A DNA stretch of 64,000 bases from Orbicella franksi (GCA_964199315.1 OZ116699.1:25606001-25670000); one strand, 5' to 3'; counted from the first letter of the stretch, positions 2,138-20,256 are shown. Program-made: numbers and translations. Notes: a model not told the origin generated them from the letters alone.

Positions 2138-2510
2138 CACAGTAAATTTCAGCGAGTTAAATTAACCCCCATTGTGGGGTTAATTTAACTCTTCAAGCTG
2201 GAGTTAATTTTTTGGGAGTTATTTTAACCCCAAAAAGGAGTTAAATTTTACTCCATGTAGGAGTTGAATTCCAGCCATCAGGAGGCCGGAGTTATTTTAA
2301 CTCGCCAAGTAGAGTTAGTATAACTCAGTTTCGGAGTTCCTTGGAAGGAGTTACATTTACTCTGTGAGAAGAGTTAGTTTCACTCTATCTGAATGAGTTA
2401 GTTTCACTCTACCAGAGAGTGAATTTTATTCACTTTCAGTTGGAAGCCACTTTGGAGGAGTTACTTCAACTCTTATAGAAGAGTTAAAATAACTTACTTT
2501 GGGGAAGAGA
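2138..2510 (+). repeat. Left TIR and subterminal GGAGTTA/TAACTC motif cluster
   Basis: Dense short motifs (GAGTTA, AACTC, TTAACCCC) in both orientations, as typical of CACTA subterminal regions. Confidence 0.8.
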
Positions 2511-4787
2511 GTTATTTTTTTTCTTACTGCATGGGAGGTATTTATTTATATTAATTAATCTACGTGATTAATGCATCAAAGCCACTGGATTCGTAGAGTG
2601 ATCATGTCATCACTACAATGTGGTTTTTGGTCACTCATTTGTTGGACGATCTCCTTGCACTCTGACAGTAATTATGAGTTACTTAAACTATATCAAGAGG
2701 TAAATGTTACCATGTTCACTCTAGATTCCTACTGCACAATATAGAAATCACGAGCTCATAATCTAACTGCAATATAGAAAATAATGGAGAACCCATCACA
2801 ATGCCAGATTTTCAATATTTGAACACTAATGGAAATGCTGCAATCTGATTGGCCGAGTGCTTCGACTCTTCAACTACCACATCATAGAAATCTTGAGCAC
2901 ATAATCTATGGTTAATTTTATCTAGCTCATTATTCAAGCTTATGACAAAATATTTCTAGACTATGGTGGAGAGAAAAGTATTATACATTATAAAGTGATA
3001 AAATAGACAGTATATTGTTTATCAACCAATCAATCTTTATTTATACTGTCAAGGGTAAAGCATGTAATAGTTATACAATTAATAAACTTGTGGCCCTCTA
3101 AAATACACAATAATTAAAAATCAATAACTAACCTATGTGAAATTATTTTAAACCAGTCAAAAATGCATGCGAGATCAGCTAAATTCATGTTACATTATGA
3201 TATTGAAAATTAAAACTGTACAAGTTAAAAACTGGAAAAATGGTGAATTTCTTTAAACTGTACTAGACACATACAAATCAGTCAAGCCCTTTTTATAACC
3301 TTGGGCACATTATTTGTGGGCATAAAGATAAATTATTTGCTTGTAATTAGAGCTCTTTGTCAATCTCAGTGACATCACATACTTAATCCATGAAAGGGGT
3401 ACATACAGTAATTGAACAGCAGCTGTAATATTTTCCCCCTTAAAGACCAAAAGCAAGATTAGAAAAAAAAGAAAACAACACTGTATTGATCACTTTTGTG
3501 CACCAAATGAAATGTTTATGTTGCTCATACGAATTAAATCTTTCGTTAATTGATTGTTCCAATGTCAAATCTTTGCACAATATATTTATTTCTTGTTACA
3601 ACACCATACGGTTTGACTTGATTTAGAGGCAAGAAAGAGGCCAGGTCTGTGTGGTGAACTATCAGTTTCCTTCTAGGGTGTATGGTTTGCACCTCAAAAC
3701 TTTGATAATGGCTGTCAAACTGAGTGGTTGTCAGTTTTGAGACAACAAAGCAAATATCACTGAAGTTTCCATCTACAATGCAAATTTTCAGTACTTGTCC
3801 AAAAACTGGATTGTCGTACTGATCTGTGTCAATTTGCAAAGTGCAGCCAGTTTTGTATTTAGTTCCAAGAATAGAAACCCATTTCAACCTGTAAAAACAA
3901 AACAGAAAAAGAAACAAGTCAATAGATATGACTGTCACAGTATGCCTAACGTGACAGGCCGTATTTGGGCAAGTACACTCTTTGCATTTTTGTAATATAA
4001 TTATACTATTACACCATAATAACTCATGTTGTAATGGTATCTTGAAAGGTAACCTATTAGTGTTGCACACGGTCTTGGTATTGAAACAATAGGAAAACTA
4101 ACCAATAGTCATTAACATCTATAACTAGATTTATTACAGTCATAACTTACTCAGTTATTGGTGTCTCATTAGTAACTTCTGGATTATCCCCAGAAAGGAC
4201 ATTGCAGTAGTCCACATCTCCTGCATAGCAGCAGTGACCTGAAATTTAAATGTTAAATTATCATGGAAAAATGATTTGCATATGCAGCTAAATTAGTCCA
4301 TGTACAATTAACAATGCTTCTGATTCAACATATTCATCTTTAACATTTAAGCCATCTTGTTTATCTATTTACAAGTTATAAAGACTACTAATATTACCTG
4401 GTCCTGTTTCAATCCCTTTCTTGATAAAAGATGACAGATTGCCCTCTGAAGTTTGAAGACGGTAACATACACCCTCTTGGTGACGCTTTGCAAGAGAATA
4501 GGGCAAGTTTGTGAAATTTCCCAAGTGTGCTGCAAGCCGCTTGAATTCATGATGCTTAGCCTCGAAGCGCATGCACCAGCTTCGTATGAGAGGTCCAATG
4601 CTAAATCAAAAGTTGTACATCATCATCAATGTTCACTATGTAATGACACAACTGACCTGAGGTATCGAACCCACACTTGGTGAAAGCTAAGTGATATGTA
4701 ATCATGTTGAAATAAAGGTTGTATTTAAAAACTGGAAGTACCTTAAAGCAATGTCAGCCCATCTGGAGCGATGGACAATAAGTTGAC

Positions 4788-5490
4788 TACATCAAGCTGT
4801 AAGAGGTGTGTCACCCGCCAGTTGTGATAGCTAATACATTAAGCTGCATGATTATTTCTTTTGTTACATCAGACTGTATGAGGCGTGCCACCCGCCAGTT
4901 CTGATAGTTAATACATTAAGCTGCATAATCATTTCTTTTGTGTTACATCAGACTGTATGAGGTGTGCCACCTGCCAGTTCTGATACTTATTACATTAAGC
5001 TGCATGATTATTTCTTTTGTGTTACATCAAACTGTATGAGGTGTGCCACCCGCTAGTTCTGATAGTTATTACATTAAGCTGCATATTTATTTCTTTTGTG
5101 TTAATACATCAGACTGTATGAGGCGTGCCACCCGCCAGTTCTGATAGTTATTACATTAAGCTGCATAATCATTTCTTTTGTGTTACACCAGACTGTATGA
5201 GGCGTGCCACCCGCCAGTTCTGATAGTTATTACGTTAAGCTGCATAATCATTTCTTTTGTGTTACATCAGACTGTATGAGGCGTGCCACCCGCCAGTTCT
5301 GATAGTTATTACATTAAGCTGCATAATCATTTCTTTTGTGTTACATCAGACTGTATGAGGCGTGCCACCCGCCAGTTCTGATAGTCAAAATGTTAAGCTG
5401 CGTGATTATTTCTTTTGTGTTACATCAAACTGTATGAGGCGCGTGTCATACCCAGTTCTGATAGTCAATAAATTAAGCTGCCTGATAATT
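4788..5490. repeat. 79-bp minisatellite (~9 copies) in a transposase intron
   Basis: Unit TTACATCAGACTGTATGAGGCGTGCCACCCGCCAGTTCTGATAGTTATTACATTAAGCTGCATAATCATTTCTTTTGTG; period 79 measured between 5261 and 5340. Confidence 0.93.
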
Positions 5491-17970: not shown

Positions 17971-18007
<37 letters not shown>

Positions 18008-19899
18008 GTTGGGTGATATTAATGTTAATTATATATCAGCTTTAAACAGAAGGAATATCTTTGACTGATAGTTGTATTTTGATTTCAAGGAATTGAAGAG
18101 GCTGCTGCTGTTTTGTTGTTGCCACGTCTTTTGAGGGAAAAGGGAGGAAGCACAGAAGACTTCATTAAGATCTGCATGGTATGGCTAATTCCATGCATAA
18201 TTGAAATATAAAATAATGTAACATACAAGGCCCAGTTATACAAAGTATTGTCACTTCTAATTCTGGTCTGGAATGAAGACACATCACACCTTTATTAATC
18301 TCTCGTGTTTGTTTATTGGGCCACTGTTGTTTACCGTTCCTTCCACCCCAGAATGAAATATTCCAGTGAGAGCCACCTCTCTACAGTAGCAACTGTTTTT
18401 GGTCCCAGTGAATGGTCCATACATTAACTCTTACTTTGACCTCTCCACAATGGTCACCTCTCCAGAATGGCAATGGCCATCAAAACTTGTCTCCAGGCAG
18501 CCAAAAACACTTCTTGACAATGGCAATTACAAAATAATATACAAAATAATAATCCATTTACATGTATCATTTGAGTTTTAAATGTTACATTACAACCTGG
18601 AATGAAGGTAGATATGTAATTTATAATAATTAGTTCAATACCTAAATGTTAGTAATTTATTGGTATAACTTGATCTGTTTTTCCTGTAGGTTGAGCTTAT
18701 AAAAGCTTTATGTATTTGAATATCAAGGATGACCTGGGATGCTTCATTTACAATAATTTCTTTTTTGTTTTCCATGTAGGAGGAAGAATCTCTTGACAAT
18801 GTGATCAAGCAGACAAAATTCCCCAGAATCATTGGTTCTGGGGAATTTTGGGATTTGGACATGCTAAGCATAGCAGTTGAGGGGGAGGTCGTTCTGGACT
18901 TGGGGTCCACCTCCATGGCCGCCACATTAAGCCTTCTTGTGGCATGTTATTATGTGTTTAACATAATGTATCCTACTAAGTGCTCTAATGCCTTTTTTTT
19001 CTGTGAAGCTGCTTTGCTTGATATACACCAAACTGCCAAAAAGCGAGTAGCAGTAAATAAATTTATTTCAGCTCTGAAAATGTAGGAAGCTTTGTGAGAG
19101 GCTGCATTATAAAATACTATGAATTAGTTTATAATTGTTTATACAATATTTATTTAATTATTTTCTAAAAATTATACAGAAACCCTGTAATAATTAGTGA
19201 TTTTGGACAAAGTAATACATAACACGAATATAGATTTCATAGAATTATACTATAATTGATAGGCTATTTATGCAATAGATATATTATAAAATTTCTTTCC
19301 TGTCAAGATAGTTAAATTCAGAATTGGTCAGGGCTTTGATAGTGTAGCTTGTTCTTCATGTATTGTACCATGTACCAAGCAAGCAAGTACCCACACAGGT
19401 AGATACATGCACGGGTACTTTGTATTTCATTTTTTCAATCTCTTTTGGAGTGTTTTGCTAATAAACCACTTTCAGCAGCTAGATTTCATTAAGTTATATT
19501 TCAATTGAGACTATTTATGCAACAGATGTATTTTATTTTTTTTTTATTCTCTTTCCTGCAGAAAGATTTTATAAGGGTTTCAGATAGTTGTTATTATTTA
19601 TGTTTCATTACTACCATGAATGATAGTGATATTGTGATAATAAAAATTGTAATGGTGATACTCCAAGGTAATTTTTGAGTGTTTGGTTAATAAACCACTA
19701 TCAGAAGCAAATATATGAGTGTGTGTCGTATACTGGAGTAATTTAAGTTGCAATTCATAGTTCTGTTGCATTATATTGCTGTAGTATTGTTTTAAAGCTA
19801 ACGTACTTCTCTTTCACAAAGGCTCTGGGGAATAAACCGCCGAGCCTTGTGCAGAGGTCTGTTGTTTTAGGCTGAATTTTTATATGTCAAACCTGGTCT

Positions 19900-20256
19900 A
19901 TTAACTCCCTCCTGAAAGAGTTAAATGTATCCTCAAAAAGGAGTTCTTTTTAACTCCTTTTTTAGAGTTAAAGTAACTCCAATCAAGGAGTTAAATCATG
20001 AGGAGTTAAAATGACCTCAAAAAAGGAGTTATCCTGTACCTAAACTTTTAATTCCATTTTTGGAGTGAAAATAACTCCATAAAGAGTTAGAATAACTCCG
20101 TTTTAAGAGTTAATATAAACCCGACCTCAGAGTTGTTTTAACCCCAAATTTGGAGTTAAATTAAGGAGTTAAAACAACCCCAAAAAAGGAGTTATCCTGT
20201 ACCTAAAATTTTAACTCCAATTTTAGAGTTAAAATAACTCTCTGAAATTTACTGTG
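19900..20256 (-). repeat. Right subterminal GGAGTTA/TAACTC motif cluster and TIR
   Basis: Same motifs as the left end. It includes a twice-repeated AAAAAAGGAGTTATCCTGTACCTAAA block. Confidence 0.8.

Follow-up and report, generated by a model that had tools for sequence, protein, structure and literature searches.

A probable two-gene, EnSpm-like CMC transposon in the coral Orbicella franksi, with a divergent transposase gene and a head-to-head accessory gene

The window, by which we mean the whole stretch of 64,000 nt of Orbicella franksi DNA analysed here (GCA_964199315.1 OZ116699.1:25606001-25670000; no N in the window), contains at positions 2138-20256 what is very probably a member of a family of cut-and-paste transposons of the CMC (CACTA/EnSpm-Mirage-Chapaev) group that has few copies in this coral and was mobile until recently. 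The intact form of the family probably carries two divergently transcribed, intron-rich genes. The minus-strand gene would encode a DDE transposase with two N-terminal C2H2 fingers and a CMC core (D YFDEFE, D CGDNLG, C(2)C, DAMHD, H(3)H, E RFEAKH). By analogy with characterised DDE transposases, this enzyme would recognise the CAC...GTG termini, excise the element and reinsert it with 3-bp target duplications. The plus-strand gene would encode an accessory protein of 549 aa, predicted to be mostly helical and of nuclear type, with a KKRR motif and a Ser-rich linker, which most likely acts in transposition or its control.

The structure of the element was read directly from its ends. The boundaries at 2138 and 20256 are exact, and identical ends bound other copies in the same genome. 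The termini are of the 5'-CAC...GTG-3' type and form perfect 15-nt terminal inverted repeats, the right repeat (20242-20256, plus strand, CTGAAATTTACTGTG) being the exact reverse complement of the left repeat (2138-2152, plus strand, CACAGTAAATTTCAG). The same left terminus was found in the copy on C3, and the copies on C1 and C10 read CAGAG... at this position. An earlier sequence-only reading had delimited an 18.1-kb element with matched inverted termini at 2138-20256, which is upheld by these data; its description of the element as "giant" was generous, as a sister copy without the nested insert measures 15.8 kb.

Inside the termini are subterminal arrays of GAGTTA/GGAGTTA motifs at 2153-2537 (left) and 19857-20241 (right, with motifs in both orientations). 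GGAGTTA was found 21 times in the 64 kb against an expectation of 7.1 +/- 2.9, a count that none of 100 shuffles reached, and 18 of the 21 matches lie within about 370 bp of the element ends in both orientations, so that the GGAGTTA arrays previously noted there are real features of the ends. Of the 57 occurrences of the core GAGTTA in the whole window, 15 and 18 fall in the terminal 400-bp segments at the two ends of the element. The left array of the window copy lacks 82 bp that are present after 2237 in the other three copies. An Rfam search of the element gave no match. The element interrupts a 184-bp satellite array, which extends over 53-2137 and 20257-28484. Since the satellite on the two flanks is out of phase by about 75 bp, approximately 75 bp of satellite were lost or rearranged at the insertion junction. 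The satellite itself has a 366-bp higher-order period, and its units are about 77% identical.

Three further copies were observed in the 497-Mb genome, 98-99% identical over the shared parts. The C3 copy (15.8 kb, about 99% identical) is without the insert found at 12001-14379 of the window. The C1 copy (C1:37179411-37187018, L003) is a 7.6-kb internal-deletion derivative corresponding to window positions 2138-3259, 9976-10820 and 14694-20256, while the C10 copy (C10:24308605-, L004) has the same deletions and the same left flank and diverges past window position 14829. Because 30 nt of left flank are identical in the C1 and C10 derivatives, these reflect duplication of a locus, or insertion into another repeat, and not two independent transpositions. 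One of the deletion breakpoints lies 1 nt into accessory exon 3. Substitutions between the window and C3 copies amount to about 0.6%, which points to very recent movement or duplication, and the existence of sister copies and deletion derivatives shows how recently the family was still mobile.

The transposase gene (3546-10186, minus strand, stop codon at 3546-3548) was delimited as ten coding blocks, at 9548-10186, 8314-8469, 7822-8037, 7238-7420, 6805-7005, 6131-6531, 5662-5952, 4396-4614, 4105-4242 and 3549-3908. All ten blocks are conserved with octocoral loci at 30-65% amino acid identity (tblastx). The ten exons claimed for this gene are matched by these blocks, and the junctions between them are deduced from the sequence. 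Two C2H2-type zinc fingers, C-x2-C-x13-H-x4-H and C-x4-C-x12-H-x4-H, are encoded at the N terminus (9998-10186, minus strand). In the three octocoral-type loci every Cys and His of the fingers is conserved, and in the C12 and L033 copies some of them are; Pfam gave no match for these fingers.

The class of the transposase was deduced from a comparison of its blocks, as profiles where homologues were available, with open reading frames (ORFs) from the same genome that carry matches to Transposase_21 (PF02992). Five consecutive blocks were collinear with these ORFs, T3 aligning to 86-126, T4 to 200-239, T5 to 276-349, T6 to 378-458 and T7 to 458-492, with profile E-values of 1e-4 for T5 and 7e-7 (probability 92%) for T6. 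The relationship was recovered solely by profile-profile comparison. The first catalytic D was in register (YFDEFE in the element, NVDWFQ in the Transposase_21-bearing ORF), as were the second D with the C(2)C motif 18 residues on (CGDNLG..PCRECM and ACDIPA..GCSKCK). DAMHD of the element aligned with DPMHN, and the H(3)H motif was in register (KMHYMIH(M) and NMHLHSH), as was the catalytic E (GPLIRSWCMRFE and GPVHNFWLFSFE), for which the element reads CMRFEAKH. These catalytic features, together with CA..TG termini and target duplications of 2-5 bp, are those described for the CMC/CMCT clade and EnSpm (PMC12730594). The collinear profile alignment thus placed all of the diagnostic residues in register, and we conclude that the minus-strand gene represents a divergent EnSpm-like lineage of the CMC group. 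Catalysis is what we infer for this protein, as are the protein that would bind the repeats and any oligomerisation considered below. The CMC/EnSpm type assigned to the element in the sequence-only reading is supported by the termini, one 3-bp target site duplication, the subterminal repeats, the catalytic and zinc motifs and the profile homology to the Transposase_21-bearing ORFs.

The accessory gene (11045-19085, plus strand, stop codon after 19082) comprises eight exons, at 11045-11122, 11500-11628, 14693-15007, 15324-15515, 15935-16296, 16936-17113, 18090-18178 and 18780-19082. Its ATG at 11045 (plus strand) and that of the transposase at 10186 (minus strand) confirm the proposed layout of two head-to-head genes that point outward, with 858 bp between them (10187-11044) that presumably serve as a shared promoter. 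The exon model was built from the spliced relatives P0015, P0078 and P0111 together with splice signals. Splicing was observed directly by alignment of a polyA RNA run (X24, raw reads) and of contigs of RNA-labelled runs (X1 among them) to the C3 copy: introns 1, 3, 4, 5, 6 and 7 were confirmed by spliced reads and/or contigs, with GT..AG on the gene strand, while no spliced RNA was seen for intron 2 in the same reads and contigs, where depth was low. The RNA-seq check that had been suggested for the 8-exon gene therefore agrees at six of seven introns. The product length of 549 aa also holds, as the reconstructed 8-exon gene encodes 549 aa if unbroken. Exon 3 is Ser-rich and built of 21-nt repeats, and exon 5 carries the KKRR motif. 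An approximately 100-bp segment in intron 6 (~17927-18023; L001:2774-2870) was covered several thousandfold by contigs of RNA-labelled runs; these contigs have unrelated sequence on either side, Rfam gave no match, and the segment probably represents a short repeat or a small RNA of high abundance.

Spliced homologues of the accessory gene were found in Paramuricea clavata (P0111, 493 aa), Dendronephthya gigantea, Acropora, Priapulus and a crinoid. An exhaustive HMMER search with the central two exons, by way of the spliced relative P0015, returned 24 proteins, mostly fragments. A 522-aa match from HMMER (P0080) was rejected as spurious, being a low-complexity repeat protein. Word-based protein searches with single exons yielded nothing beyond nameless fragments. 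Pfam gave no match for any of the large exons of either gene. The accessory protein family is undescribed and travels with the transposase lineage.

The pairing of the two genes was observed at several other loci. The same divergent pair is present in P. clavata (L005), in two copies in D. gigantea (L006), and in assembly L034, which has octocoral-like genes. A second family in the O. franksi genome (C12:11440570-11459060, L035-L037) has the same head-to-head pair; it is degenerate, with transposase frameshifts, and is 30-55% identical to the window proteins. Because similarity between the D. gigantea copies breaks off some 550 bp past the accessory gene, at ...TAAAATTTACAGTG, their terminus was taken to be CACTGTAAATTT, as compared with CACAGTAAATTT in the O. 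franksi element; the D. gigantea subterminal motif is GGGTAA instead of GAGTTA. One transposase locus (L033) is flanked by long terminal repeat (LTR) elements and lacks the accessory gene. Since the head-to-head pair recurs in the octocorals, in L034 and in the C12 family, the second gene is a conserved part of the element and not a one-off capture, as far as complete copies go. The sequence-only reading had regarded homologues mostly unlinked to transposases or terminal inverted repeats as the observation that would count against it: complete copies were found linked, and several partial loci were found unlinked. A RefSeq model from D. gigantea (P0112, LOC114543235; L006:10001-18994) combines the first two thirds of the accessory protein with a Transposase_21-type tail that has the canonical motif CD.PA...CGF...GC.KC; it is probably a model mis-joined across two different elements.

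Five observations weigh against the proposed identity of the element. First, Pfam Transposase_21 (PF02992) did not match the transposase exons when these were searched exon by exon at E <= 1, and a PF02992 scan of the genome gave 28 matches elsewhere and none on the element or its copies. Second, the accessory protein is without a recognisable DNA-binding or other domain in Pfam, PDB and fold searches. Third, EnSpm target duplications are 3 bp long, and a clean one was found at just one of three flank pairs, that of the C1 copy (CCC/CCC); the C3 flanks are imperfect (AAA/AAG), and the window copy has none (ACA/TGG). Fourth, accessory-like sequence also occurs unlinked to a transposase, in Priapulus caudatus (L007) and in the O. 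franksi genome (C8:22238160-22241437, C7:7952610-7952846 and C1:14974075-14974656, with 30-52% identity over one to three exon-like blocks). The Priapulus locus holds five of the eight accessory exons and is modelled by RefSeq as a gene with several isoforms. No transposase was found within 10-15 kb of any of these loci, which may be decayed (non-autonomous) derivatives like the C1 copy or domesticated genes.

Fifth, every near-identical copy examined has a lesion in the accessory gene, namely, 1-nt deletions in A-runs in the window and C3 copies and the loss of exons 1 and 2 in the C1 copy. The window copy has seven A in the run at 16034-16040 (plus strand), where the C3 and C1 copies have eight, and the run thus falls 1 nt short at 16040 and shifts the frame of exon 5. 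For this stretch of A, the polyA reads gave no reported difference from the length in the 8-A copy. The C3 copy is one A short in the run that ends accessory exon 6 (window 17104-17113), and in contigs of two RNA-labelled runs this stretch has its longer form. Since those contigs restore the C3 run and no exon 5 difference was reported, some of the homopolymer differences may be assembly errors or polymorphisms. The transposase of the window copy is also broken, by a premature TGA in block 4 (7376-7378, minus strand), where the C3 copy has CGA (Arg) and homologues have N, A, R or P. With this nonsense codon, the accessory frameshift and a nested insertion, the window copy is dead in both genes.

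The accessory protein could, as one candidate role deduced by analogy with maize, bind the multi-copy subterminal motifs in the manner of TnpA. This is a hypothesis, and the ends could equally well be read by the zinc fingers of the transposase. It is possible, although on the whole doubtful, that the accessory protein is encoded by the element and does not bind its ends at all, acting instead as a regulator that counters host silencing or that titrates or represses the transposase. Such a function would suit a protein with no recognisable DNA-binding fold in an element whose transposase has conserved C2H2 fingers that could read the ends, and the divergent layout gives both genes one control region. 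Maize TnpA likewise has a regulatory function at the promoter of its element (PMC1636069). The dense subterminal arrays argue the other way, since some protein must read them and as many as 30 or more sites are rarely covered by fingers alone.

A more elaborate model came from the sequence-only reading, in which the accessory protein, with a polymerising N-terminal SAM domain and a C terminus that binds GGAGTTA, is the animal equivalent of TnpA and is either related to host SAMD3 genes or their origin. As a whole this is unlikely. In its favour, exons 1 and 2 resemble the two halves of a SAM-type helical domain, and the intron position before exon 2 is common to Priapulus and the octocorals. 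When the exon 2 family was aligned by hhalign with SAM domains of the same genome, it fell on SAM positions 35-63 in the expected register, but with an E-value of 0.021 and a probability of 2% the alignment was not significant, and the exon 1 profile, built with its D. gigantea counterpart, gave no alignment to SAM. No SAM domain was found by Pfam in accessory exons 1 and 2 or in the homologues P0078 and P0111. A PF00536 scan of the genome did find other half-domain exons, at E-values of 4e-5 to 4e-4, and matched no copy of the element. PDB searches with the stop-free segment of exon 1 and with the profile of exon 2 homologues returned chance matches alone and no SAM. An N-terminal SAM domain is not supported by these searches. 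Two transcript contigs of a relative (L008/L009) considered as a contiguous SAM-coding stretch were rejected, since they represent a decayed copy without a recognisable exon 1.

Structure prediction, which had been recommended as a check, was performed on the octocoral homologue P0111, and the AlphaFold models of the whole protein (predicted local distance difference test [pLDDT] score of 60) and of its residues 108-222 (pLDDT 75) were all-helical. In the AlphaFold2 model, residues 1-37, which correspond to the proposed SAM region, form three helices in a short-short-long arrangement (pLDDT 47-73). None of these models matched a solved fold: Foldseek gave E > 0.2 for the whole model and E >= 3 for residues 108-222, with no credible fold match, and VIA-align gave best Z scores of 5.7 and 3.8, respectively, with nothing above background. 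The predicted helical domains match no DNA-binding fold, and the transposase has conserved zinc fingers of its own. With regard to SAMD3, the relatives of the accessory protein are all annotated as "uncharacterized" or "hypothetical", none is called SAMD3, none of the 24 HMMER proteins could be identified as such, and a literature search on SAMD3 with transposons or corals gave nothing relevant. Of the features that had been attributed to the protein, the Ser-rich exon and the KKRR motif (read there as a nuclear localization signal) are present; the SAMD3-like part found no confirmation.

Two points remain in favour of the more elaborate model. The subterminal motifs vary by species while the termini are conserved, as expected of a fast co-evolving binding protein, and the look-alikes of the accessory protein in the ESM Atlas are nameless cnidarian and chordate clusters, mostly chordate, which we regard as leads only. 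An extension in which the accessory gene founded a family of partner proteins confined to a single animal CMC/EnSpm lineage, a divergent SAM-like N terminus oligomerising on species-specific arrays to pair the ends and the bilaterian relatives (Priapulus and the chordate clusters) being domesticated descendants, seems to us improbable. Still less credible is the capture of a host gene by one element lineage (transduplication), or a conserved pair of host bidirectional genes. In its favour are the habit of DNA transposons of capturing host fragments and the unlinked accessory-like loci in Priapulus and in this genome (C8, C7 and C1:14.97 Mb). Against it, the pair is enclosed by terminal inverted repeats at more than one place in the genome, in copies that are 99% identical and in deletion derivatives; two octocoral species, assembly L034 and the C12 family have the divergent layout even though their proteins are 30-65% identical; the terminus of the octocoral copies, close behind the accessory gene, is almost unchanged; and the unlinked loci are partial (one to three exon-like blocks here, five of eight exons in Priapulus).

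Several further features accompany the two-gene CMC transposon. Window positions 12001-14379 (2,379 bp, non-coding), in accessory intron 2, are an unrelated nested transposon. It is bounded by 151-nt terminal inverted repeats (97% complementary), the empty site is duplicated as AATT, and the C3 copy is without it, which makes it a later insertion of another element. Positions 12466-13175 within it are a tandem array of 122 bp. A transposase intron contains, at 4788-5481 and likewise in the C3 copy, 8.8 copies of a 79-bp tandem repeat with 90% identity. Two METAG scaffolds from ENA (L038:864-1726 and L039:321-1114) contain transposase fragments that are 95-98% alike, with an in-frame deletion of ~237 bp. 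Their interpretation as a spliced T5-T6 junction was rejected, as the deletion is genomic and joined at a CC microhomology rather than at GT..AG. Since these fragments carry the T5-T6 deletion, other coral samples contain further variant copies.

The window copy itself, being dead, has no functional importance of its own, and the interest lies in the family. Animal CACTA/EnSpm elements are poorly characterised, also with respect to any need for a second protein such as the TnpA that maize En/Spm needs, and the sole published animal case found, SmTRC1, had non-conserved, alternatively spliced products. The coral family offers a cleaner system, with a separate partner gene, near-identical termini, differing subterminal motifs and copies that are 98-99% identical. 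The role of the second protein and the identity of the repeat reader are directly testable on account of these termini and motifs, the young copies and the separate gene. For annotation, the consequence is that a group of cnidarian gene models now labelled "uncharacterized" belongs to transposons.

Among known systems, PIF/Harbinger elements resemble the coral element in being two-gene DNA transposons in which a second protein is needed alongside the transposase, and they provide an animal precedent for a separate accessory gene. They encode a transposase and a Myb/SANT-like DNA-binding protein. They differ in belonging to another superfamily with other catalytic motifs and termini, and no Myb/SANT-like domain was detected in the coral accessory protein. 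Nearer relatives are the EnSpm ORFs of the same genome (L024, L026 and L031), which share the collinear catalytic core with all motif residues aligned. These ORFs are up to about 960 aa long, mostly uninterrupted, and pass Pfam, whereas the coral lineage described here is split into 10 blocks, is too divergent for Pfam and has C2H2 fingers.

The maize En/Spm element, with its TnpD transposase and the subterminal-repeat binder TnpA, shares with the coral element the CAC... termini, a 3-bp target duplication (clean in the coral at the C1 copy only), subterminal motifs in two orientations, large size, many introns, two encoded proteins and the motifs D, D, C(2)C, H(3)H and E. Both maize proteins are derived by alternative splicing from one same-strand transcription unit (PMC1636069), whereas the coral element has two opposite-strand genes with a shared 858-bp upstream region, no Transposase_21 match and an accessory protein without a known domain. 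In animals, SmTRC1 is a CACTA element with non-transposase proteins for which a TnpA-like role was proposed by its authors (DeMarco et al. 2006, PMC1636069). It is defined by a clear Transposase_21, and its extra proteins are same-strand splice forms that are not conserved outside the species (PMC1636069). The coral accessory gene, in contrast, is a separate divergent gene conserved between O. franksi and the octocorals. The searchable literature, in which Repbase was not covered, held no description of a two-gene animal EnSpm lineage of this kind. The CMC group is already known; an animal EnSpm-like lineage with a separate, divergently transcribed partner gene appears to be new.

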